64,000 nt of DNA from Marsupella aquatica (taxonomy: Eukaryota > Plantae > Marchantiophyta): assembly GCA_973895155.1 (NCBI GenBank), contig OZ316897.1, positions 13,763,375-13,827,374 of the forward strand, in the 5' to 3' direction. A program made the position numbers and the translations under genes. Of the stretch, positions 7,535 through 43,500 are shown one piece after another (the first letter of the stretch is position 1; every line of letters begins with the position of its first letter). The notes under the pieces are model-generated. The model had not been told where the DNA came from. It searched no databases and saw only the letters and a program-made list of their open reading frames with translations.

Positions 7535-8010
7535 AAAGCAGCCCATCCAACAGAGGATGGACCTATTTTATGTAGGTTAACCACAAGGGGATAATACCCA
7601 TGGATACCAAAGGGATGCTAGTCTATGTAGGTTAGCCGCAAGGGAACAATACCCCTGGATACTAAAGGGATGCTATTCTATGTAGGTGCCACAAGGGGAC
7701 AATACCCATGGATAAGGCTATTCTATGACTGTAGGTTAGCCATAAGGGGACCATACCCATGGATAGGACAGGCACCAGACCAGGAGGGAGACACTCTTAC
7801 ATCAGGGCCTATTCTATGTAGGGTAGCCACAAGGGGACAACACCCATCGATCCCACAAAGACCAGACCAGACCAGGAGGAAGACAGAGTTAACCCAGGGG
7901 CTGAGCCCCACATACACATATACCCTCCACACCCTTTGCGTGTGGAGGGGGAATTGAACCTGGGACCTCTCGGTTCTAGGCTCAGCCCCTGGCCAACTGA
8001 CCAAAGCCAG
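7535..8010 (-). mobile_element. tRNA-derived SINE-like element with a tandemly repeated body
   Basis: Minus-strand head GGCTTTGGTCAGTTGG (A-box) ... GAGGTCCCAGGTTCAATTCC (B-box). Body repeats the motif ATGTAGGTTAGCCACAAGGGGACAATACCCATGGATA. It interrupts a ~34-bp TGTTCACCTGATT tandem array (7417-7520, resuming at 8012). Confidence 0.65.
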
Positions 8011-8192
8011 TTGTTCACCTGATTATTGATTTTGGTGAAACCCAAAAATTTGGATGACAGATTGATTGATACCGACCGTTTTGAAACAATAGACTGATCG
8101 ATCGCTTTAACTTTGCTTTCTAAGATTGCCCACTTCATACGTTTGGAATGCCAGTTCTGCTTACTTAGCAAAGATTTTGTTCAAAAGAACTA

Positions 8193-8400
8193 ATTGGCTT
8201 TGGTTAGTTGGCCAGTGGATGAGCCTAGAACCGAGAGGTCCTAGGTCAATCCCTCTCTGGACATGCAAAAGTGGAGAGTGTGTCTGGGGGTGGGGTGGTT
8301 GGAATCCTGGTTTCTTCTCAGCCCCTAACTAGTCCATTTTGGGGCCTGGTTCAGCCTTCTCTCCCTCCTGGCCTGGGTCCCTCCTAGGGCGTCTCAATCT
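8193..8400 (+). mobile_element. Second, more diverged copy of the tRNA-derived SINE head
   Basis: TGGCTTTGGTTAGTTGGCCAG..GAGCCTAGAACCGAGAGGTCCTAGGTCAATCCC matches the minus-strand copy at 8010-7920. Confidence 0.6.
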
Positions 8401-14364: not shown

Positions 14365-15969
14365 GAGGCAAGCCGAAAGACATGAAAGATTATTCATCTC
14401 TTTCATGCCCTTGATCAACTCAGAACCATTCAGGACTTTGATGATACACACTCAACATGGTTAGAGGCTAAAGCCCCCTTCTAGAGAAGGCAATGATGTG
14501 ACAGGAACTGAAGTTCTTGGGAGAGCAACAGACTAACAATGAATTTTGTCGAGTACTTGCAAAGATTATGGAACAGAAAAGCGGGAGTAAGAACTCAAAC
14601 CACACCTGCCCATATAAAAGCCTCATCCCTTGTCTTGCCATTGCTCATGCCTATTCTATGCCTGATCCTATGGTGAATAGTGTACTCACCATAAAAGGTG
14701 GAGCTCAAGCACATTGCTAGTGAAATTGAACCTGTGCACTTCATAATCAAAGCTATGGATAACCTATAGCTCGTTATAGATTCAGTTGTGCGTTAAGGCA
14801 ATTGAATAACTCAAACTGCTAGTTTCTCACAACAAGTGTCCAGTGAGATTCAAAATGCAATGAAATATAGGGCAGCGACAATAGGCATGACAAAAAGCAG
14901 CCTGTCTCCTGCAAGAAAGTATAACACTATTATCCCACCGGAAATTGAAGAAACAATTATGAAAGGTGCCTTACGGTTTAGGATCACTGCACGCGGAACC
15001 AAACATTGCTCAGGAAAGCTAGGGAGAAACGAGATGTGCCTTTGATACATTGGAACTTCCAAGAACCCAATGCAAATATCGTGGATGCCTCTAATCCACA
15101 ATGTGCCTGTACCCCTCCTCTCTCCAATGATCCTCACTACGCCAAATGCCCCCTTGCCCCAGCAATCCAGAATGCACCAAATGCCTCTCTCCTGCCTAAA
15201 CCCATGTTTGCATGACAAAAGATCGATCAAGAATTTGCGACAAATGATCAAGGAACCCGATGTCTTGTAGCAGCGGCGGCCCTAAACCCAAAAATGATAT
15301 GTAGACTTAATTCAAAATGTGTTCATGTATAAACATGCCGGTACCATAGTTGAACCCTGTTGAGCATAGACGACGATCGCAACGGCAAGCCCATGAACCA
15401 TCCAACGCACAATAGTCGACACAAGAGATACGTGGTTCACCTCCTTGAGGCTACGTCCACGGGAACACACAAGAGAGCTTTACTGAACTCTAAGCCCGTC
15501 GGCTATACCGAGTCTCCACAGTGTACGCTCTCTCTATCTCTCAAGTGGCTCCATAACAATGAGCCTTGGTTCTACCTCTCCAAACACACATGCCTCTTAT
15601 GATATAGTGTGCAACTTAGTTGTACCTAACCACATAGTTGTACCTAATCACGTAGTTGTACCTAACCACATAGTTGTACCTAATCATGTAGTTGTACCTA
15701 ACCACGTAGTTGTACCAACCCACGTTGTTGTACCAACCACGTCATACCTAACCTAGACGTAAGAGTAAGTACCCAACAATCTTCCCCTTGACTCTGGTCT
15801 AGGGGAGAGTAATACTGCCAATGTATATGATCCCTCAGCGGGAAGTTCTGGACAGAAACCAAACCGGTTTCCCTCTCTAACTAGAGCAAACCAGAACTAA
15901 GCCGTAGCCTAATACATAGGAATGAGGAAGAGCATATATCAGTAATTACAATGAATGTTTAAGAAAACT

Positions 15970-18900
15970 CTACTTGTGATGCAATTGCAAAACCTGCAAT
16001 ACGTCACGGTGTCTAGAGAAACTCTCCAAAGGAATCACTTTGGTAAATGCGTCAGCCGGGTTGAGTTTACCATCAATCTTGACTAGCTCAAACAAATTAT
16101 CAGACACAGCCTGCCTGATAAAATGGTACCTGACGTCAATGTGCTTCACTCTGCTGTCCATCACCTGGTTCACAGCAAGGTGGAGCGCACTTTGACTATC
16201 ACAATGGAGCTTCACATTCCCCTGTGGCAATCCCATTTCAGTGATAAGTCTATCCAACCAAATCGCTTCCTTTGCTGCTTCCGCAGCTGCAACATACTCC
16301 GCTTCTGTAGTAGACTGAGCAATACACTTCTGCAAAGTAGATCTCCAACTTATGCATCCACCGCCAAGTGTGAACACGTATCCTGTTGTTGATCTCCTTC
16401 GGTCCAAATCTTGTCCATAGTCAGAATCTACATAGCCAATCAATGATCTAGCATTCTTTGCATTCGCATCAAATAAAAGACCATGATCCACGGTACCCTT
16501 CAAGTACCTGATAATCCACTTCACTGCTTCCCAGTGTACCTTCCCTGGATTCGACATGTACCTGCTCACCTTGCCCATAGCCATGGCAAGATCAGGTCTA
16601 GTGCAAGTCATCAAATACATGAGACTCCCCACTGCCTTGTCATATGGAACCTTTGACATCAACCCCTTCTCTGTGTCATCCGTAGGACAGAACGCTGATG
16701 ATAACTTGAAGTGTGGAGCCAACGGGGTACTTACTGGCTTGCTATTCTCCATGTTGAACCTTGCAATTACCTTCCTCGCATAACTGCTCTGCGTCAACCA
16801 TAGCTTGCCAGCCTCCAAGTCCCTAGTGATCTCCATACCCAAAATCCTCTTAGCTGGCCCTAAGTCCTTCATCTTAAACTCTGCACTAAGCAGTGCCTTG
16901 AGCTTAACAATCTCAGACCTATCCTTGGCTGCAATTAGCATGTCATCCACATAAAGTACTAAAACAATGAACCCAAAGACAACATTCTTCACCGGTTTTA
17001 AATACACACAAGGGTCAAATACACTTCTGTGAAAACCTTGTGACCGAATCCAATCGTCAAACCGCTTGTTCCACTGTCTTGGTGACTGCTTCAACCCATA
17101 CAAGGATTTCAGCAATCTGCAAACCAATTCCTCCTGTCCTCTCTTCACAAAACCTAGCGGTTGTCTCATGAAGATCACCTCTTCCAATGTGCCATAGAGG
17201 AAAGCTGTGACAACATCCATCTGATCTAGGAGCAGACCAAACATTACAACAAGTACACACAATAGTCGTATTGTAGAGTACTTAGCAACTGGTGAGAAGA
17301 CCTCATTGTAATCCACACCTTTCTCTTGTGTGAATCCCTTTGCTACCAATCTAGCCTTGTAGACCTTCGATCCACCTCCTATGGAACTATCCTTCAGCTT
17401 GTAAATCCACTTGCTGTCCACCACTTGCTGACCCTTAGGCAGCTTAACAAGCTCCCAAGTTTTGTTGTCCTTTAGTGACTGCATCTCCGTTTGCATTGCT
17501 GCAGTCCACTTCTGCTTCTCCTTTGAAGCACTTGCCTCATGAAATGAAGAAGGTTCTCCTTCTTCCAAAATTAACGCATCACCCTCATCATCAGCTGTAA
17601 AATCATCCTCTTGCAGTTGAGATGAATCAACCCACTGTCCATACCTTGGTGGAGCGCGTACAGTGCGACCAGATGTTCTTCTAGCCGATGACTCCGGTTG
17701 ATCTGCGTGTGCTGGTACAATTTGAAGCTCAACAGCATCCACTTGCTGCTCACCAGCATCAACAAACTCCTCTGGTTCCTCTGGCACAGGAACCAGCTCC
17801 ATAATTGGAGCAACTCCTTCTCTTCGGTCATGCACCTCATAACCAATCTCCCCCTCAACGAGATCCGGGATAGGAGATTTTCCTTTGTCAGTACGGGAGA
17901 CCTGAGTATTCTCCCCCTCCTTCAATAATCTGGATTCATTGAAGGAAACATCCCTACTAACAACGAGCTTACAGGCAATAGGATCCCATAGCCTATAGGC
18001 TTTCACACCACTCTGGTACCCAAGAAAAACACATTTCCTGGAGGTAGGATCCAACTTGGTCCTATTCTGCTTTGGTGTGAGAGCATATGCATCACTTCCA
18101 AAAACTACCAAGCCATGATAGTCTGCTTGCCGCTTATAGCGCATCTCAAACGGCGTTTTGAAATTGATAGCACTAGAAGGAGAAAGATTTACCAAATAAG
18201 CTGCGGTATTGACAGCTTCTGCCCAAAATTCTTGTGGTAAACCTGATTGGCTCAACATACTCCGTGACCGCTCCAACAGTGTCCGATTGAGCCTCTCAGC
18301 GACACCATTCTGCTGTGGAGTATAAACTGTGGTGAGATGGCGAGTTATCCCCTGTTCTGAACAGTACTCTTCAAATTCCATTGAAGTGTACTCCCCGCCG
18401 TTGTCTGACCTCAGACTCTTCACCCTTGTATCCAAACACTTGATCGTGTTTCCAGTCTGATTCTCCACCTGGGCCTTCCACTTCTTAAAAATGGACAAGA
18501 CATCAGACTTATGCGTCATGAAATAAATCCACACAAATCTTGAGTAATCATCAATAAATGATACATAGTACAACTTTCCAGAGTGTGAGGGAGTCGGGGA
18601 TGGACCCCACACGTCACTATGTATGTACTCAAGAACCGCTTTGGAACGATGAGTTCCAACACCAAAAGCACGACGATGCTGCTTTCCAAGAATGCAATGC
18701 TCACAAAACTCTAATTTACAAGATTGCAAATCAGAAATGAGTCCATTCTTCCGTAAGATAGCCAAACCCTTCTCACTCATGTGGCCTAGCCGTGAATGCC
18801 ACAGTTGAGTCATCTCCTCGTGAGACTTGGTTACATTGGCCTCTCCACATACAGTATTGCCCTGTAACACATACAAATTCTTTTGTCTACTCCCCTTCAA

Positions 18901-19242
18901 AATCACTGTCTCTCCCGACCTGACTTGAAGTTCACCATCAATAACGCTCCATTGATGACCATTTGAATCCAACACACCGAGTGAAATCAGATTCTTACGC
19001 ATGCCAGGTACATACCTGACTCCGGATACTGTGCGCACAGCGCCATCAAACATTTGAATCTTCACAGACCCAATTCCCTCAATTTGACAGGAGTGATCAT
19101 TTCCCATCAGAACTGAACCGTTTGAAACAGAGTAAGAACTGAAAAACTCACGAATGTAACAAATATGAAAAGAGCAAGCACAATCAAGAATCCACACATC
19201 ATCTGCTCTCCTAGATGACGTGCACAGGGCATACCCCCGGCT
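15970..19242 (-). CDS. pol: Copia Pol (protease, integrase, RT, RNase H), in frame with gag after one stop codon
   Basis: WILDCACSFH, WHSRLGH, HSDVWGP, RSDNGGEY, YKARLVAKG, LYVDDML, EAEYVA and ADAFTK motifs; uninterrupted frame. Confidence 0.95.
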   Translation of the reverse strand, partial: SRGYALCTSSRRADDVWILDCACSFHICYIREFFSSYSVSNGSVLMGNDHSCQIEGIGSVKIQMFDGAVRTVSGVRYVPGMRKNLISLGVLDSNGHQWSVIDGELQVRSGETVILKGSRQKNLYVLQGNTVCGEANVTKSHEEMTQLWHSRLGHMSEKGLAILRKNGLISDLQSCKLEFCEHCILGKQHRRAFGVGTHRSKAVLEYIHSDVWGPSPTPSHSGKLYYVSFIDDYSRFVWIYFMTHKSDVLSIFKKWKAQVENQTGNTIKCLDTRVKSLRSDNGGEYTSMEFEEYCSEQGITRHLTTVYTPQQNGVAERLNRTLLERSRSMLSQSGLPQEFWAEAVNTAAYLVNLSPSSAINFKTPFEMRYKRQADYHGLVVFGSDAYALTPKQNRTKLDPTSRKCVFLGYQSGVKAYRLWDPIACKLVVSRDVSFNESRLLKEGENTQVSRTDKGKSPIPDLVEGEIGYEVHDRREGVAPIMELVPVPEEPEEFVDAGEQQVDAVELQIVPAHADQPESSARRTSGRTVRAPPRYGQWVDSSQLQEDDFTADDEGDALILEEGEPSSFHEASASKEKQKWTAAMQTEMQSLKDNKTWELVKLPKGQQVVDSKWIYKLKDSSIGGGSKVYKARLVAKGFTQEKGVDYNEVFSPVAKYSTIRLLCVLVVMFGLLLDQMDVVTAFLYGTLEEVIFMRQPLGFVKRGQEELVCRLLKSLYGLKQSPRQWNKRFDDWIRSQGFHRSVFDPCVYLKPVKNVVFGFIVLVLYVDDMLIAAKDRSEIVKLKALLSAEFKMKDLGPAKRILGMEITRDLEAGKLWLTQSSYARKVIARFNMENSKPVSTPLAPHFKLSSAFCPTDDTEKGLMSKVPYDKAVGSLMYLMTCTRPDLAMAMGKVSRYMSNPGKVHWEAVKWIIRYLKGTVDHGLLFDANAKNARSLIGYVDSDYGQDLDRRRSTTGYVFTLGGGCISWRSTLQKCIAQSTTEAEYVAAAEAAKEAIWLDRLITEMGLPQGNVKLHCDSQSALHLAVNQVMDSRVKHIDVRYHFIRQAVSDNLFELVKIDGKLNPADAFTKVIPLESFSRHRDVLQVLQLHHK

Positions 19243-20277
19243 TCATAAAACATACTCATCATTGAGTAAATCAGCTTCTCCATCAGCCCTAGCCACATTT
19301 GCCGATGAAGTTTCCGCTGCCTTTCCCTTACAGTCTTGCTTGAAGTGTCCAACTTGGTTGCACTTCCAACATGTCACCTGCCTCCTCTGAGGGGATTTAC
19401 CCTTGGACTTAGATCTGGATTTAGATCTAAACTGGGTTCTACGGTCCCCAGTTGGTCGCTGCATACTCCTCCCACGGTTAACATTGAGGGCAGCACCAGA
19501 TGATGAAGGCTGTGACGTGATGTGCATCTTCTGTTGAAGATCATCACTAAGCAGAGAACTTACCACGTCATTGTATGAAATGGTATCCCTATCACGATGC
19601 AACAACACTCGTGATAGGGACTGGTAAGATGGAGGCAATGAACTAAGAAGTTGCAGAGCCTTCGTCTCATCATTCAAAGTCTTCCCAAGGTTTTCCAAGT
19701 CAACAACCATGTCGTTGAAAGCATCCACATGGTCTTGCAACTTCGTACCAGATTCCTTCATCCTGAAACTCATCAGTTTGTAGGAAGTGTAGAGCCGGTT
19801 CGACAACTCCTTGCGGTGATACTTGCTCTGCAATTCCGCAAACAAGGACATGCAATCCTTATGTGCACCCAACTGCTTGATGATGGGAGGCATGAGATAG
19901 AGTGTAACACACCACACTCCCTGCTCCTGCATGCGGTCCCATTGTTTCTCATCAACATCGTCTTCACGAGGGCTCAGCAGTTGGCCCATCCCTGACGCAT
20001 AAAGCACTCCCTTCATCTGCTTCTCCCATAGCAAGTAGTCAGAGCGCCCATCATACTTTGTCACTTCATACTTGGGTCCCCCAAGCTTGAAAGTCCCCAT
20101 CTTCTTCTTTACCGTGAGCTCCGGTAGTAGTAGTGCTTCCTCCACCACACGCCGCACCGGTGATGGTATCGGTGTCACGTGCTCTTCCTCCTGCTCCTCT
20201 CTCTGCCCTTGAAACCTCCGCGGTGATCCTCGTGCTTCAAGTTCCACGTCTTCAAAAAACTCCTCCGAATCACTCAT
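19243..20277 (-). CDS. gag: Copia Gag (344 aa)
   Basis: KYDGRSDYLLW and LLSSLPPSY motifs; zinc knuckle CWKCNQVGHFKQDC; ends at an in-frame TGA. Confidence 0.93.
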   Translation of the reverse strand: MSDSEEFFEDVELEARGSPRRFQGQREEQEEEHVTPIPSPVRRVVEEALLLPELTVKKKMGTFKLGGPKYEVTKYDGRSDYLLWEKQMKGVLYASGMGQLLSPREDDVDEKQWDRMQEQGVWCVTLYLMPPIIKQLGAHKDCMSLFAELQSKYHRKELSNRLYTSYKLMSFRMKESGTKLQDHVDAFNDMVVDLENLGKTLNDETKALQLLSSLPPSYQSLSRVLLHRDRDTISYNDVVSSLLSDDLQQKMHITSQPSSSGAALNVNRGRSMQRPTGDRRTQFRSKSRSKSKGKSPQRRQVTCWKCNQVGHFKQDCKGKAAETSSANVARADGEADLLNDEYVL

Positions 20278-22334
20278 ATGAGAAAGTCATAAAAAATGTT
20301 GTTTTTCACAACTTCTCAAAAAACTCGAAACTCAACACCGCCGCGTAGCCCACAAAGCTAGGAGTCCAATACTGAAAACCGAAATCAAAATCGAAATTTG
20401 ACGGAAAAGTTATTCAAATTTTGGTCGAGGTGGGTAAAACCTTGGGAAACTCCCCCGTTTTGACCACCTCAGGGAATAACCGAAATACCAAGTACAACCC
20501 GTTGTCGAAATTGCGATGTGATTGGTGCGCTGCATTGCCAACTTCAATGGCTATGACCTCGCCGAAAAATAACCAAAAAAGTTACCGTTCGGCGGATGAA
20601 ATCTTTGTCGGACGGTCAAAAAATAGCTCTATGGTTTTTTGGAATATTCTATGACCCTTGTACAGGCCCTGTGGGAATTTTGGAAGAACAATCGAGGGGC
20701 TGACATGTGTCCTCGAACCCCCAAAACCCCCTACCACCTTTCGTCGTCGAAATCTGGTCGCGCGCGCAGAAAATACACACGGCAGAATGTACCCCTCGAC
20801 ACCAAACGCAAGATATCTCACTCGGGTTTTGACGAAATCAAGATCCGATTTCAGATTTGGAAACTAGACTCCGAGGCGATGAAGATTGATATAAGAAGCA
20901 CCCAAAACGAGGAAAGAACGAGGGAGAAAAAAATTGGTAAAGATGACAGATTTCTCTCAATTGCCATAGCCAATTTCGAATCAGTTTTTCAAAGAGAAAA
21001 AAATGGTACCTTGTCAACAACGAATGTTGATCAATTGCACTTGGTGCCGTCACCAAGTCCAACAAGGTAATTGATTTTGCTTAGCCTTCCTCTTTGCATC
21101 AAAGAGCCAATCCCGGACTCAAAAACAATCGTCTTGCCTCAATCTCTCCGTTGAGTCAAAACACTTGACGCTTCTCCCTCCGAGTCGATTGCCAACTTTC
21201 TTCACAAAATCCAGAAGGACAAAAACTTAGATCTCTCTGCACCACGAGCTCCGTTCAACGATTTCTTCACACTGTTAGAAAGCTCTTGCCCTGATCTATC
21301 CGTTGAGCCCATAAACTCCAAGTTCCATGCGATGGAACTCTGGAAAATCCACCAACACTCAACGCTGGAAAAACCGTCATGAAATCCCGTCACGAACACA
21401 CGTCACCTCCCAAGCATGCTCTGATACCAATTGTTGAGCATAGACGACGATCGCAACGGCAAGCCCATGAACCATCCAACGCACAATAGTCGACACAAGA
21501 GATACGTGGTTCACCTCCTTGAGGCTACGTCCACGGGAACACACAAGAGAGCTTTACTGAACTCTAAGCCCGTCGGCTATACCGAGTCTCCATAGTGTAC
21601 GCTCTCCCTATCTCTCAAGTGGCTCCATAACAATGAGCCTTGGTTCTACCTCTCCAAGCACACATGCCTCTTATGATATAGTGTGCAACTTAGTTATACC
21701 TAACCACATAGTTGTACCTAATCACGTAGTTGTACCTAACCACATAGTTGTACCTAATCACGTAGTTGTCCTAACCACGTAGTTGTACCAACCCACGTTG
21801 TTGTACCAACCACGTTATACCTAACCTAGACGTAAGAGTAAATACCCAACAAACCCCGTGGTAGATTGCGTTGTTGGCAATTGGAATGAAGCAGGATGGA
21901 CTATGGCATGCTATGCATGGTGGGCATTGCATCTAGGTACCACACAAGAACTGAGTGTATGGAATCTGACAGGCGGTCTAGTTTGTAACAAAAGTTTCAT
22001 GGGGACCCATCACACCAAGTTTTCCAACCAGGGGTTCCATCAAACATATACCTTAGCAAGTTTCAATCCTTGCGTTCACTTTGTTAGTTTATGTGGTTTT
22101 CACACCATGGTCTGGTCGACAATAAACACCTCTCATGCCTAGTATTTACCTTGAAGAGCCACCAGCCATGATAAAAACATGGTTACACAGATTTCACTAC
22201 TTTTAGTATATTTTCCTGAAATTGTGGAGCAAACTCTTATGGTGAAGGAGTCCAATGTGAAAAGGAATAAATCTTGTACACTTCTCCCTTTTATATGGCC
22301 AGTGGTGGTTTAAGACAGAATGACAATGGGCAGG

Positions 22335-31412: not shown

Positions 31413-31437
31413 TGCGGTGAGCGTGGATCGAACACGC

Positions 31438-31480
<43 letters not shown>

Positions 31481-31485
31481 CCCGC
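31413..31485 (-). tRNA. tRNA-Phe: tRNA-Phe(GAA), cytosolic type
   Basis: 73 nt GCGGGGATAGCTCAGTTGGGAGAGCGTCAGACTGAAGATCTGAAGGTCGCGTGTTCGATCCACGCTCACCGCA folds as a full cloverleaf. A TTTT terminator lies about 30 nt downstream. Confidence 0.98.
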
Positions 31486-36346: not shown

Positions 36347-39117
36347 ATGAAGCCGAGGAAACTTTGTCAGAGAGATCCAACCTACGTCTTCAAGAAGAGC
36401 AAGACGGCTCGGTGTGGATTTCTTTGTTGTACATTGATGATAAGCTTTGCGTTGACAGTGTTCCACGAAGAAATGTTCGTCGTCGACTTCTTTCTGCACA
36501 GTAAGTGCGGCTCCTTAGTTTCACTTCCTGCAGGCCAGTTCTTATTGAATTCGCTATTTGAAGTTGACTTGCGTCACCCTGAAACCTAGGAATTAAGCTA
36601 AGCCGTGTATATAACAACGTTCTCAATACTAACAGTTTCTTCATTGAAATTAGTCTCTTCAGCATTCTGCTCACGAAATCTATGATCTGTCTCAGAAGTG
36701 TCACTAGACTTGATTACTGGTAGGCGATATCTCAGGTTTTATGTCAAACGTTCAGAAGTGTTGCAGCTCACCAAAAAATTCTGAGGAGAGTTCTCTTCCT
36801 CTACTTTGCAGAGGAATTTCGTACTCTTGAGTTGTCAAGAATTCGCAGATGATAGACAGGTTAGGGAGAGATCTGATCATGTTTCTGAAATCTTACCTAG
36901 TAGTCGTGAGTCCTAAAGGTAGCGGTCTGGCACAGCCACAACAACTGCCCTCGAATGACAGACCAGGCTAAACACAGTACAGGAGTCAATGCGTGTATTA
37001 GCAACAATGACGCTTGTCGTTGTTAACACAGTCCATACGTACATGAGCCATGAATGAATGTGCCTACGAGGAACTACCCTAGAACAGCATATGGACTATT
37101 GTCTTTCTAGAGTTTAGACGGGTCGGTGAAATAATTTTACCGAGTAGCTTACACTCTACACCATTGTGTAAAGGTGCTACCAAGAGTCCTGGGTGATGGT
37201 ATTAATTTATTCATGGCCGGTCCAGATGGACATATTGAGCAGGCTAAATTGAGATCGATCTCTGCCATGATTAATTGTATCATTTTCAATCCACTTAATG
37301 GTATCCATGTACAGGGTTATATAGTGTAATGAAGAGCTAACTGGTGAACAGCAGTGCTACCTGAGAGTCACTGCTGAGAGTCACCGTCACCTATCAGAGT
37401 CAGATAGTACCAGCTAGGGAATGACTTTGATATATGTTTTCTATTTAATGGTGCAAAGAAGCCTTCCGAGTTACTAAGGAGCACCTATTGTAAGAGATCC
37501 ATAGTGGGGAGCCTTCCAGATTAGTCGAAGCTTCTGGCTTGAATGGGATTAACTAGAGTAATGAAAATCTCTGTAGATCAAATGTCTAATGTTTGTCTCT
37601 TCATTCTTTCAAACGAAGCTGCAGATCGATGGAGAATACCGATTCTCGGTAAGGATGGTCCACAGCAGGAAGCATTCTGGTGTGATCGCTTGAATAGGAG
37701 GACAGACGTTTGTCTCGTACGAGGCGACGTGCACGTAGTGACGGGTAACTCCAGCGCGGTAGTACTCCATTCTCGAATTTGTGAGCATTTTAGTAGCTGT
37801 GGTCGAGTCGAGACTATACGGCCATACACTCGTAAGTGGGAGAAGCAGACCATGGCGACAGTGCAAACAGTGACCCTCAAGTGTGATATCAATTATGACA
37901 GCAAGGAAAGCTCACTTTCTCCTATTGATAAGACCTCAGATCATACAACCAGCTTATGTGACGATATCCATTCAGTTCCTGCAGTGTTGTTCTCGTCCGC
38001 CGGATTTACTGGAAACCCCTACCACGACTTCCAGGATGTCCTCATCCCTCTGTTCATCGTCTCACAGCACTTGAAAGGCCATGTAGTGTTTGTCGTCAGC
38101 GACATCAGACCTTGGTGGGTCGAGAGATGGAGTGACGTCCTGCATCAGCTGAGCCGTTATCCGATCATCGATTTCAAGGAGGAAACTGGTCAGCATTGCT
38201 TCCCAGAGGTCATGGCTGGTCTTTATATACACCGAGAGTTCGGGGTGTCACCCTCCTTGATGCCGAATGGCGAGAATATGGAGGACTTTCAGAGACTCCT
38301 GTACCAAGCGTTAGCGTCTCCAAAACTGAAGAAAAGTAAAATCCCTGGTGGGTTTTCAAACCGACTGCAGCCGCGCGTGAAACTCTTGCCGACGCAGCAG
38401 CTGCAGACTCGGCGACCCAGGTTACTAATTATTGCGAGAAAGGACACGAGAGTCCTGATCAATCAAGAGGAAGTGGTGGACCTTGCTCGAGAGTTGCAAT
38501 TCGACGTGATGGTCGTGACACTCAGCGACAAAATCGATCTTCAGACTATCTACGGGTACGTACAAGATTATAACAATCGAATCGACAATCGTATCACATC
38601 ATTTAATTAATTGATACATATAGGATTTGAAACGCGAGAACTTTTGAAACAAGACACGTTTTACCTAGCCTGTCTGACCTACTCTTCCAAATTGACTCAG
38701 CTCGAGCTTGATGGACGACACGCTTATGCCTGCAGGTGGTTTTATACGAGCGACGTGGTAGTGGGAGTTCATGGAGCAGAGCTTGCCCACATTGTATTCA
38801 TGCGAAGGAAAGCAGTTTTGGTACAAATTGTTCCGCTGGGAACGGACTGGCCGGCCAGTCACTATTATGCAAGCCCAGCAGTCCATGACCTGGGTCTGAA
38901 TTACATGGAATACAAGATCAAACCAGAAGAAAGCTCGTTGAGCAAGAAGTACGGCCTATGGCACCCGATTGTGCGCAAGCCGGGCCATTATATAAAGAAA
39001 GGATGGGCGACTCAAAAGCAGCTGTATCTCACGGAACAAAATGTGAGCCCATCTCCAACAGCCTTGAGAAGAAGTCTGGTCGCCGCCAGATGTATAGCCT
39101 CATCTGCATTTCCCTAA
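36347..39117 (+). CDS. Glycosyltransferase family 61 (DUF563), ~488 aa; exons 36347-36500, 37625-38555, 38736-39117
   Basis: N-terminal membrane anchor. Motifs CDRLNRRTDVC, IRPYTRKWE, GFTGNPYHDFQDVLIPLF, HCFP, VGVHGA, QIVPLG and YKIKPEESSL. GT-AG intron phases are consistent. Confidence 0.92.
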
Positions 39118-40269
39118 CTTACTAGAGATGAAAAAATCTCCATGTTATGAGCATTTTCCTCCTAGCTAATCGATCCAAGTTTTGTTTGGAAGAGAAAACA
39201 TAATAAACTGGTACACATTCTCTGTGTGCAACACCAGAAAGATAGATTTGCCACATCGACGTGAACGTCAGAGTCAGAGCCGGTCAGAGTGTAAGTTACC
39301 ACTGGGCATATATCGCTGGGGTAGATGAATTTGTAGGCAATCCATTTACGCAGTGGACTCGAAATGAAAATACTGATGTCGGCGTATTTGGAACCATAAT
39401 AGTAACTGCTTGAACAAACAGTTTACCACGTGTGCGAGCACTCACAGTACATTTCGAGTGCTTACTGATATCTTCCACTGGTGTTCTACCGGCCTCTAAT
39501 CCTCTCATAATTACAGCTACAGTAGCTCTGCCTTTCTTGATCGAGTCTCTTTGTTCTTCCATCCTGCCCGTGAGTGAGTGAGATCCTTCCCCGGCCCGAC
39601 CTGCCTGGGACTTTGGCCTGGCTATGGTATACGTATGATATTTTCGAACAGCAACACCAATGTCTTCGCTAAGTGGTTCCATTCGAACCTAATGTTGCCT
39701 GCTTACAAGTTTGTAGTTCTTCATGGATTGTTCTTCATGGATTGTGTACTACATCTATGCCCCAAGGAAGCTCTTCCCCGTGCTGTTACGTAGAAATATT
39801 GGACAATTATCCTCTGACTCGGTAAGGTTATTGTATAATCTATCAAAGAAAGCCTTTAGACCCTCACAGGAACTGTTGGGGGCGAACCTGGAAAGGGGCA
39901 CTAGAATGAATGAGGCCTCCGGAGAGTGGCACAACACCTATTTACTAACAATGTACTTTAGAATGAACTGTCGATCAGTAGACCGTGGCACAGTAAAAGT
40001 TGCTAGATCATGGCAAGACCCGGAAATGCGCACGATAATATTGACCACCTATTTACTAACAAAACGTACTCGGGTATTGACCATCTATTTACTAACAAAA
40101 TGTACTCGGGTATTCAGGCTATTTAGAATGAAGCACCCATCTATTTACTAACAAAGCCCGGACATTCAGGCTAGTTACAATAGAAGGCTAGTTGTTGGAA
40201 ATGAACCACACTCGAACTAAGATGGATACAGCCACAAAGGGCTCGAACTAAGATGGATACAGCCACAAA

Positions 40270-40340
40270 GAGCCTGTAGCTCAGTGGTAGAGCACTACGA
40301 TGTACATGGGAGGTCCTAGGTTCAATTCCTAGCCGGTCCA
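40270..40340 (+). ncRNA. tRNA-like Pol III module in TRIM LTR1 (not a functional tRNA)
   Basis: A-box TAGCTCAGTGG, B-box GGTTCAATTCC and an intact T-stem; anticodon arm is degenerate. Confidence 0.75.
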
Positions 40341-40464
40341 TGCTCTTGAAAGTTCCAACATGATATCATAGCCAAAGAAAAGGAGTTTCCCTTGGAGCGA
40401 GTGCGGCTCAAGGGTGGGTGTTGGAAATGAACCACACTCGAACGAAGATGGATACAGCCACAAA

Positions 40465-40535
40465 GGGCCTGTAGCTCAGTGGTAGAGCACTACGATGTAC
40501 ACGGGAGGTCCTAGGTTCAATTCCTAACCGGTCCA
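40465..40535 (+). ncRNA. tRNA-like Pol III module in TRIM LTR2
   Basis: GGGCCTG..CCGGTCCA acceptor-like stem with a G3:U70 pair (tRNA-Ala-like), plus A and B boxes. Confidence 0.75.
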
Positions 40536-43500
40536 TGCTGTTGAAAGTTCCAACACTAGTTACAATAGAATGAAAGACTGTGTGTTACTGACCATTCGAC
40601 TTTATGTTTTGGAATATATAAAGCAAATTAACTGGAATGTGAGAGAATCCGCCCAAAGAATTTCAAATAATAAACTAAATGATGTTTTATCTGAATCTAT
40701 AGGCAGGAAGAGTGCAGTGATCTGTTTGCAGTGAGTCGTTCATCACACAAAAATCGTACACTCCTATATTATTGAGAGAAGATTTTGCACCCTAACCATT
40801 TCCGCTCATATGAACATTCGATTGAATGGCTGGCTATTATCCTTCGACCATTTCCGTTCATATGAACATTAGCTTGAATGGCTGGCTATCATCCTTCACT
40901 ATCTGGCACCAATATTGCTTTCTCTGTTTTCATTACGGTTCCAAATTGAACAGGTGTGAAGCAATAGATCGAGCAAGAAACATGTGCACACCGAAGACTC
41001 TGAGTGAGAGAAATTGCAGAGAAAGAGAATGAATGTTCCGTAACTTTAACAAGGTTTTTCCTGTGAGCAGAGAACACGCGAAGCCAACATTGAATTCCAG
41101 TTATGTTCAAACATTCTACAGCTCGCATAGGCACGGGGCATAGCACGACACAAAAGACAAAGAAACGTCCTCTGCTACCCTGCACCTAAACTCCCTTAGT
41201 TGGCTCTAACTTTCAGGGGAAATTCAGGGTAACTATGGTCTGGTTAAGCAAATACAGAGGAGAAAACGCCAGTTTCCACCTCACAACAAGCTTGGCATAG
41301 ACATAATCTTTGCCAAAAACTCTTTCCGGAATTTGGTCTTACAATGGTAAATTATATATAGACAGTTGAGAGTCTCATCAAATCGGGAATAATCAACTTG
41401 GCTGGCTACAGTAGCTCCTGGATAATTTTCCCTTCAGCCTCCTGAAGTTCCTTATTAACTGATGAAACTAATCATATTGGACAAAATACTTTTATTGAGA
41501 TAGTTTGACAATTCCAAGATGATAGAATAAATTTGGTTGAATGTTGTTTCACAATGGGCTTCTAGCCTGAGTTGGACATGAAGCTGAAGATAACAATGAT
41601 TGAACCTAGAGTTTAGAAGTATTGTAATAGTACGAGAGTGGGGCTACCATTGTAGATGCAGATGAAATGTGGAAGTAAAAGCACAGGGAGACACTGAGAT
41701 TAATGAGAAATAGTAATTATGGACCCAATGGGAAGTGCAACCAGCAAATTTTTAGTCACGTACAGAAACAATGGTGTTTTCAAAAACAATACACTTTAGT
41801 CACATACAGGAACAATTATGTTTTCAACAAAAAAACACACAAGTGTTTGTGTTTGATTTCAACTCAGGGCCTCAATCAAAGGGGTGTCCTATATCACTCT
41901 CAAAGTTTTAGGGGAATAATTAAGCACCCTAAAACTTACATTAATAAAGTTTTTTGGGGATTTTTTACCTCTAACTTAATGCAATATTCTTGAAGTATTC
42001 CTAAATTTGGAATTAAAAAACTCTAATGTTCTTCAACAAAAATTTAAAAGTCTTTCACTAAACCCAATAAAAAAACCTGTACTTATTTGTGCGTAACTAA
42101 TTGGAAGAAAATAAGTGAGGACGCCGGGGATTTCAGGCAAGGAAAAATAATTCAACCCAATAATTATAAAAATAATAAAAAAGGAAAACAAATCTGAATG
42201 GGTAAAAACAAAGTAACCGGTTGGATGTCTTGTGAAGCGATGTATAGTGTTTCAAAACTTGTATTTTTCAAATTTTGTAAATTTCTGAAAAAATAAACTA
42301 GTAGAAATGTAAATAATTAGAACTTGTTTGCTCTGTCAAGCTCTCCAGAACTTGTAAGGGCAAATAGTTCCTCTACTTTTGCTAAAGTTAGAAAGAATAA
42401 TGGAGAGCTTATTCTACTTTTGCTGAAGTTACAAAAAATAAAGATATCGCATGTCTTATAATTAAGTGTAAGGCCTTGTTTCAGGAGCATTATGGGCAAT
42501 AATAGCTGGTCAAATCTTTAGCTTGTGATCTAGTTTTTTCCGGGCATTATATTCCATAATGCTTTTTGAGGCATTGCTTTTAGGGGCACTTAGGTGTCTC
42601 AAAGCTGACAATTTGATGGACCTTAACTCTTGTGAGACGGGTTACTTATGGACACAAAAAGATACTGAACCACAAGGATTGGTCTTATGCTAGTACCATT
42701 AGTCAATGTAGAGGCTAGTTACTGAAAAAAAAAACTTCAACATAACCTTGTGAAAAAGTTATGACCATGATTGCTTTACAGGTTGCTTTATTGCCCAATG
42801 CCATCATCTTTCAAAGCTTTGAGAATGTCATCATCCGTAATTTTAGAGCTTTTGATGCCCTACTACATACAATCTATTCCCGACAATAGCAAAGGTTGAT
42901 CATACCAAAAAATCAGTTTTGGTCAAACAAATGAGTTTTATTCATTTTCTTATTGGTTTGTTGAAGAGATGCAATTGTTCAGCCATATTGAAGGCACCTT
43001 GCCATGTTTGGTTTAGAATGAACATGGGTCACAGTTCTGATGGGTCATTTTGTAAGTAAATAGTTATCTCAGTGAGATGGCCAGATTGAAATCTGTCATC
43101 ATTTAATCAGTGAGCCTCTATAATGGCCAATTTTTTTAGGTTCAAAATACAAGGGGGATTTGAGCTCTATATTATTTAATAGCCCCAGCCGATTATGTTT
43201 TTTGGATGATATACTGGTCTAGGTAAACTTGTTGTGACTACAAAAATTCTGGATTGTTGTTTAGACTTCTTGAGCACAACATTGAAGAGGACCCTACAAT
43301 ATCTTGAGTTCCATGGATTTGTTAATGATAGGTGACAAGTGCACTTTGTTCACATCTAAGTTCACATGCCTCTACCTATTAACCATGTTGAGGATGATGT
43401 AATATGATCAATTGGCTATCTGTTAATTGTCAAGCCCTAATTTTCTACAAACCTCAACCGGGGATAAAACTTTTACAAAAAATTTAAGTGCTAGCAATGC

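Follow-up and report, generated by a model that had tools for sequence, protein, structure and literature searches.

A miniature LTR retrotransposon with a tRNA-derived module in each LTR, apparently a new Helenus family, in the liverwort Marsupella aquatica

The DNA analyzed here, referred to as the window, is a 64,000-nucleotide stretch of contig OZ316897.1 (positions 13,763,375 to 13,827,374 of the forward strand, assembly GCA_973895155.1) from the liverwort Marsupella aquatica. Coordinates are counted from the first letter of the window. A TRIM (terminal-repeat retrotransposon in miniature) is located at 40193-40555 on the + strand. It is 363 bp in length, or 332 bp (137 + 58 + 137) when a duplication within its left long terminal repeat (LTR) is subtracted, and each LTR contains a tRNA-like module. 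TRIMs with tRNA-derived LTR sequence were named Helenus by Kojima in 2024 and are grouped with Cassandra and Ajax as TRIMp3 (PMC10886601). The short LTRs, the short non-coding internal part, and the primer-binding site (PBS) together with the polypurine tract (PPT) at the LTR borders are those of the Helenus structure, and both lengths fall inside the described Helenus range of 311-1263 bp. The identification of this element as a TRIM with a tRNA-derived module in each LTR is practically certain.

The left LTR (LTR1) occupies 40193-40360 and is 168 bp in length. The right LTR (LTR2) occupies 40419-40555 and is 137 bp in length. Both start with TGTTGGAA and end with TTCCAACA, and the two termini form an exact 8-bp inverted pair. 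LTR1 aligns to LTR2 with a gap at a 31-bp tandem duplication that is present in LTR1 only (40211-40272). Tandem Repeats Finder (TRF) calls this duplication at 40211-40270, with a period of 31 and 1.9 copies (100%). The duplication is placed just 5' of the tRNA-like module and overlaps it by 3 nucleotides. Depending on which duplicated unit is aligned, the LTRs differ by 4 or 5 substitutions over 137 bp, with a Kimura two-parameter (K2P) distance of 0.030-0.038.

The internal region (40361-40418) is non-coding and 58 bp in length. It contains no open reading frame (ORF) and shows no similarity to any other part of the window. The PBS, TGATATCATAGCC, is found at 40361-40373 and is of the initiator-methionine (iMet) 3'-end type with two departures from the usual motif. 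It was compared with TGGTATCAGAGC, the PBS of a Ty1/copia element in the same window, from which it differs at 2 of the 12 shared positions. The PPT at 40410-40418, read from the sequence as AAGGGTGGG, adjoins LTR2 and has one T interruption at 40415. The target site duplication (TSD), CTAGT, was read from the sequence on both sides of the element, with the left copy at 40188-40192 and the right copy at 40556-40560. A preliminary description of this DNA, made from the letters and a list of ORFs, had claimed the 363-bp layout with 8-bp inverted ends, the CTAGT duplication, the 58-bp interior, the 31-bp duplication in LTR1, and a degenerate iMet PBS with a PPT. All of these are present as given above, and its five LTR substitutions are one of the two counts that the alignment allows.

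The module of LTR1 is found at 40270-40340, with an A box at 40277-40287 and a B box at 40319-40329. The module of LTR2 is found at 40465-40535, with an A box at 40472-40482 and a B box at 40514-40524. Both modules are 71 nucleotides in length and match the Rfam tRNA model (RF00005) over its full length, with scores of 38.7 bits (LTR1) and 40.9 bits (LTR2) against a gathering cut-off of 29 bits. A normal tRNA-Phe (GAA) gene on the - strand of the window (31413-31485) served as a yardstick for a true tRNA and scores 66.1 bits. The A box, TAGCTCAGTGG, and the B box, GGTTCAATTCC, are intact in both LTRs and in sense orientation, and the D arm is perfect. Each LTR therefore carries the box A (TRGCY...YGG) and box B (GGTTC) by which Helenus is recognized. 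The T stem is paired at 5 of 5 positions in LTR1 and 4 of 5 in LTR2. The acceptor stem, with G3:U70 included, is paired at 5 of 7 positions in LTR1 and 6 of 7 in LTR2. The anticodon stem is paired at 3 of 5 positions in each module when wobbles are counted, and position 37 is a C. Minimum-energy folds of the modules are non-cloverleaf, with energies no better than those of shuffles. ARAGORN reads the LTR2 module as tRNA-Tyr (GTA) and does not call the LTR1 module. An Rfam scan of 39000-42000 at E ≤ 1 gave no match to 5S rRNA; the only matches were to tRNA.

Because of the decayed anticodon stem, the low scores, and the non-cloverleaf folds, the modules are best read as decayed tRNA genes that retain a type-2 RNA polymerase III (Pol III) promoter, and not as working tRNAs. 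The 71-nucleotide tRNA-like sequence with A box, B box, T arm, and decayed anticodon arm, as first described, passes the Rfam threshold and is borne out by the arm-by-arm reading. The accompanying description of the acceptor stem as Ala-like holds in part: the G3:U70 pair is present, and nothing beyond this pair supports the Ala label. Self-priming by the 3' end of the module itself was also considered and was rejected, as this end is not complementary to the PBS.

Contigs of four public runs were compared with 39800-40950 at 80% likeness. A search of public runs for this stretch found no RNA run that contains it. The runs X4, X2, X8, and X9 correspond to organism labels A, B, C, and D, respectively. 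The element part is matched by 188, 471, 201, and 326 contig records in the four runs. The flanks are matched by single contigs without differences in X4 and X2 and are absent in X8 and X9. The portions of contigs that have no match in the window begin at exactly 40419 and end at exactly 40360 and 40555, and the consensus agreement of these loose ends is 0.4-0.55. This low agreement means that the same LTR borders adjoin many different flanks. The hundreds of contigs with unrelated flanks at the LTR borders, present in all four runs, are those of an interspersed family. No second copy of the element is present inside the 64-kb window. A scan of public metagenome contigs gave no match to a 29-mer of the T-arm region or to a gapped pattern of B box, LTR end, and PBS, and a scan of public genome contigs gave no match to the A-box and B-box blocks.

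One contig of run X2 joins 40178 to 40556 with the sequence TAGAAGG in between. It consists of the left flank minus two A's, one CTAGT, and the right flank. This joint is the empty site of the insertion, as an allele or a paralogue. The same run holds a second flank haplotype, seen as variant contigs at 39870-39957, and the empty site may therefore be an allele, a strain difference, or a homeologue. A 15-bp TSD was considered and rejected, as the 15-nucleotide flank repeat belongs to a 17-bp tandem duplication that predates the insertion. The TSD is 5 bp, because the empty-site contig carries the 17-bp duplication with only one CTAGT. This is the TSD length described for Helenus in plants and fungi. 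A single copy without independent insertions had been named in the preliminary description as an outcome that would speak against its reading; what is found is a multi-copy family with many flanks and an empty site.

Several joints in the X2 and X4 contigs go back from the LTR end to internal or LTR positions (for example, 40555 to 40407 and 40439 to 40309). These could be LTR-internal-LTR arrays or rearranged copies, comparable to those of Cassandra and fish Helenus. Tandem LTR-internal arrays are known for Cassandra (Kalendar 2008, cited in PMC10886601).

The majority of contigs differ from the window at 40363 and 40369 in the PBS and at 40415 in the PPT, where most contigs have a purine. 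They also differ at the LTR positions 40271, 40345, and 40527. With the majority letters, the PBS region reads TGGTATCAGAGC, the sequence found after the 5' LTR of the window's copia element. In organism C, the letters past the LTR end read TGGTATCA. From the majority letters and the organism C reading, the primer site of the family is of the initiator-Met 3'-end type and the site in this copy is worn. The LTR divergence suggests an age on the order of 1-4 million years, a rough figure that depends on the assumed rate, which is not calibrated for liverworts. With LTRs 3-3.8% apart and departures at two PBS positions and one PPT position, the copy is old and most likely dead.

The variation among copies is unevenly placed along LTR2. 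Among the matches listed, the 46 nucleotides upstream of the module have at least 10 variable positions. The 71-nucleotide module has at least 4, of which 40493, 40494, and 40504 are in the anticodon arm and the fourth is 40527, where only this copy differs. The A box, the B box, and the 20-nucleotide LTR2 tail show no variation in these matches. In organisms C and D, the depth at 80% likeness is concentrated on the module, and the upstream part of the LTR follows other consensus sequences, seen as loose ends before 40463-40465. Variation that spares the A and B boxes is the pattern that would be expected if selection keeps the promoter boxes. A lack of preferential box conservation had likewise been put forward as an outcome that would count against a Pol III role; the variation found is in the anticodon arm and the upstream LTR, with the boxes spared.

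The Ty1/copia element mentioned above is located at 15358-21851 on the - strand. It is 6494 bp in length and has gag and pol Pfam domains. Its LTRs are 420 and 421 bp in length and about 99% alike, they contain 18-bp tandem repeats, and the element is apparently young. It has a GGGTT TSD, TGTTGGG...CTCAACA ends, and the iMet PBS TGGTATCAGAGC after a 2-nucleotide spacer. One in-frame stop divides the gag frame (344 aa) from the pol frame (1075 aa). The best named relatives of pol are angiosperm proteins that are about 50% identical, with none above about 55%, which does not place the host. The TRIM and the copia element have in common the iMet PBS, a 5-bp TSD, and TGTTGG...CAACA ends, and the start of the copia purine tract, TCAAGGGG, resembles the TCAAGGG of the TRIM. 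No internal similarity between the two was found within the window. The copia element is a candidate helper and no more. An iMet-primed copia, as named in the earlier suggestion of a partner, is present in the window; the features that it shares with the TRIM are common copia features.

No run of four T (T4) is present on the + strand of the element. This agrees with the earlier observation on T runs; however, 58% of shuffles of the element are likewise without T4, so the missing run is not above chance and is no evidence in one copy. The LTR tails in the loose ends from organism D (X9) are also without T4, a mildly supportive observation. In the flank, T4 first occurs at 40607.

The following explanation is proposed for the family. 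In the 5' LTR, TFIIIC and TFIIIB would bind the A and B boxes, and Pol III would initiate near the first base of the module, at about 40270. The unique 3' region (U3) would then be the first approximately 46 nucleotides of the LTR (77 nucleotides in LTR1 with its duplication), and the repeat and unique 5' regions (R-U5) would be the remaining approximately 91 nucleotides. The transcript would pass through the LTR tail and the interior, as no T run is present there to stop the polymerase, and would continue across the PBS and PPT into the 3' LTR to end at the first T4 of the flank (40607). The RNA would carry the stretch from the module start to the LTR end at both of its ends. Because the same stretch is at both ends, the first strand transfer would be possible even with an RNA that overruns the element. 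The RNA would be packaged and copied in trans by a Ty1/copia-type element, with minus-strand synthesis primed at the PBS by the 3' end of initiator tRNA-Met, and a copia-type integrase would produce the 5-bp TSD. The Pol III step, as read from the sequence, is favored with moderate confidence, and the explanation as a whole, with this step included, is considered probable to about the same moderate degree.

Several points weigh against this explanation. The link to copia rests on generic copia features. The counts of variable positions come from the matches listed, recruitment of contigs by similarity favors conserved parts, and some of the module contigs could be tRNA genes or SINEs (short interspersed nuclear elements) rather than LTRs. 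A T4-free element arises by chance in 58% of shuffles. The empty site is a single contig with 30 nucleotides on its shorter side at 80% likeness, and may be a paralogous or homeologous locus. Pol III transcription of Helenus has been inferred from box conservation and has not been experimentally validated in any species (PMC10886601).

The best surviving alternative is that the element is an ordinary TRIM transcribed by RNA polymerase II (Pol II), in which the tRNA-like segment is a passenger fossil, from a tRNA-derived SINE or a tRNA retrocopy that inserted into one LTR and was later transferred to the second, with no promoter role today. TRIM anatomy does not require Pol III, and the lack of T4 is not significant. 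Insertion of a SINE into a TRIM LTR is the origin proposed by Kojima (PMC10886601), and a second tRNA-derived repeat with the same B-box block is present in the window (7935-8269, described below). The LTR part upstream of the module, however, is just 46 nucleotides in length and has no TATA-like motif. The variation among copies and species spares the boxes and falls in the anticodon arm and upstream LTR, which is unexpected for a fossil. Both boxes are also identical or nearly so in the Helenus family of Selaginella, despite an unrelated anticodon arm. On balance, a passenger segment is possible but rather unlikely.

A second alternative is that the modules are functional tRNAs (Tyr-GTA, or Ala by G3:U70) that the element carries along as it retrotransposes. 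Both modules are above the Rfam tRNA cut-off, ARAGORN reads one of them as tRNA-Tyr, and tRNAs could be encoded by a few Helenus families of fungi and bivalves (PMC10886601). A functional nuclear tRNA gene is not what the modules resemble, with 39-41 bits against 66 for the nearby tRNA-Phe, an anticodon stem of 3 of 5 pairs with wobbles, 1-2 acceptor mismatches, a C at position 37, and minimum-energy folds that are non-cloverleaf and no better than shuffles. The LTR1 module is missed by ARAGORN, and variation across copies is greatest in the anticodon arm. This alternative is very improbable. Least probable of all is a non-transposon origin, in which local tandem duplication of a tRNA pseudogene locus mimics two LTRs: the neighborhood is rich in tandem duplications of 36, 52, 31, and 17 bp, but the exact TG..CA ends, which form 8-bp inverted termini, a PBS and a PPT placed precisely where the LTRs begin and end, the 5-bp TSD, the empty site, and the hundreds of contigs with other flanks under four organism labels leave it almost no room.

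Other features of the window were noted. The neighborhood of the TRIM contains short tandem duplications at 40039-40114, 40795-40897, and 40171-40192. Upstream of the element there is a 36-bp unit in 2.1 copies and a 19-nucleotide motif repeated four times. Downstream there is a 52-bp unit in two copies, and the target itself is a 17-bp unit in two copies. A GT61 glycosyltransferase gene with two exons is located at 37543-39117 on the + strand, 1.1 kb upstream of the TRIM. A Calypogeia fissa protein matches its two exons at 80% and 72% identity, and the next named match is from Riccia fluitans at 47%. By this gene, the host is most likely a leafy liverwort with Calypogeia as a relative. An in-frame stop at 38608-38610 was considered as a mark of a pseudogene and was rejected, as it falls in the intron.

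A second tRNA-like repeat is found at 7935-8269. It is composed of two inverted 78-nucleotide arms (7935-8012 and 8192-8269) that are 81% complementary and separated by a 179-nucleotide loop. Each arm is tRNA-like: its GGCCAGTGG resembles an A box, and its GAGGTCCYAGGTTCAATTCC block is shared with the Helenus module. Its sole Rfam match is sub-threshold, to MIR7533 (58 bits with a cut-off of 230). Possibly a tRNA-derived SINE or a miniature inverted-repeat transposable element (MITE) is present here as two inverted copies that form a long hairpin, and such a family could be the source of the TRIM module.

The element was compared with four kinds of known system. The tRNA-derived SINEs (SINE2) likewise carry a tRNA-derived head whose A and B boxes serve as an internal Pol III promoter, and are short, non-coding, and mobilized in trans. 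They differ in having no LTRs, PBS, or PPT, in ending with a tail related to a LINE (long interspersed nuclear element) or an A/T-rich repeat, and in being copied by LINEs with TSDs of variable length. None of these features fits the present element, which is bounded by two direct LTRs, contains both a PBS and a PPT, and lacks an A-rich tail.

Described Helenus hosts include rust fungi, a few agarics, and six animal phyla, with Selaginella moellendorffii as the sole plant (PMC10886601). Fungal and plant Helenus have 5-bp TSDs and are related to copia elements (PMC10886601). In the later literature no further plant Helenus family was found, and a 2026 study of sugar-beet TRIMs merely cites the class. 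The Helenus families of rust fungi (for example LTR-1_PTrit, Pucciniales) are likewise tRNA-bearing TRIMs with 5-bp TSDs and copia-type PBS relations. They are present as multiple families per genome, and their modules inflate tRNA gene predictions. Most fungal Helenus prime from a tRNA anticodon loop, in contrast to the 3'-end type iMet PBS of the liverwort family, and they show no sequence similarity to the liverwort element beyond a generic tRNA D-arm 17-mer. This 17-mer occurs 12 times in the published consensus set (PMC10886601, DataS1).

By its sequence, the element belongs to Helenus, a known class; the family and the liverwort host appear to be new. This is in line with the earlier guess that the class is Helenus and the family possibly new, as the architecture and the 5-bp TSD match and the published class has copia-type partners. 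The closest published family is Helenus-1_SMo of Selaginella, which was compared with the liverwort element by eye, without an aligner. It is 325 bp in length, compared with 332 bp here without the duplication. The two have in common a sense tRNA-like module in each LTR, a 5-bp TSD, and a PBS of the iMet 3'-end type (TGGTATCGGAGC in Helenus-1_SMo). A 20-mer of the D arm and A box, GTAGCTCAGTGGTAGAGCAC, is identical, and the block GGAGGTCCT.GGTTCAAT..CC is nearly identical. Outside the anticodon arm, the modules are approximately 88% identical (50 of 57 positions, by eye). The G3:U70 pair, the LTR start TGTT.GAA, and the LTR end TTCCAACA are also common to both. In a text search of DataS1, in which line breaks may hide matches, the 20-mer and the GAGGTCCTGGGTTCAAT block were found only in Helenus-1_SMo, as was TTCCAACA as an LTR terminus.

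The differences between the two are also clear. The LTR is 120 bp and the interior 85 bp in Helenus-1_SMo, compared with 137 and 58 bp in the liverwort element. The anticodon arms are unrelated, and the interiors cannot be aligned beyond the PBS. The acceptor pair 5:68 is A:U in Helenus-1_SMo and C:G in the liverwort element, and one T-stem pair is G:C in the former and A:U in the latter. The LTR tail of Helenus-1_SMo contains a T4 (CCATTTTCC), whereas none is present in the liverwort family. One host is a lycophyte and the other a liverwort. Likeness of approximately 80% over most of the length, as expected within one family, is not seen by eye. Because only the module arms and the termini are similar, the sequences indicate that the liverwort element is a related or convergent family, and not the same family as Helenus-1_SMo.

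Two origins for this likeness can be considered. The liverwort family and Helenus-1_SMo may be one Helenus lineage, either hundreds of millions of years old, dating from the early land plants, or passed between hosts; this is held to be unlikely. Under such a common lineage, the module would have been kept as both a Pol III promoter and a folded RNA, the latter because two stem pairs have changed on both sides. If true, the liverwort branch would have lost the T-run terminator of the LTR tail, making a full-length Pol III genomic RNA possible. More likely than a common lineage is that TRIMs with copia-type termini captured one and the same highly conserved tRNA species independently. The element makes this question testable, as one old plant lineage against repeated tRNA capture. 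It also widens the plant range of Helenus from one lycophyte to bryophytes, with relatives under at least four organism labels. Unless Helenus copies are masked, tRNA gene counts in liverworts will be too high, because each copy adds two sequences that pass tRNA covariance-model thresholds.

Cassandra, like the liverwort element, is a plant TRIM with the module of a Pol III-type small-RNA gene in each LTR. The Cassandra module is 5S rRNA, with a type 1 promoter, and that of the liverwort element is a tRNA, with a type 2 promoter of A and B boxes. The 5S-derived LTR sequence that defines Cassandra is not found at 39000-42000 at E ≤ 1. The earlier statement that Cassandra uses a 5S module in a comparable way agrees with PMC10886601. 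Within TRIMp3, Pol III transcripts have been validated for Cassandra only (PMC10886601), and the liverwort element, with a sense strand free of T runs, is a clean natural case in which to ask whether the genomic RNA of an LTR element can be made by Pol III.

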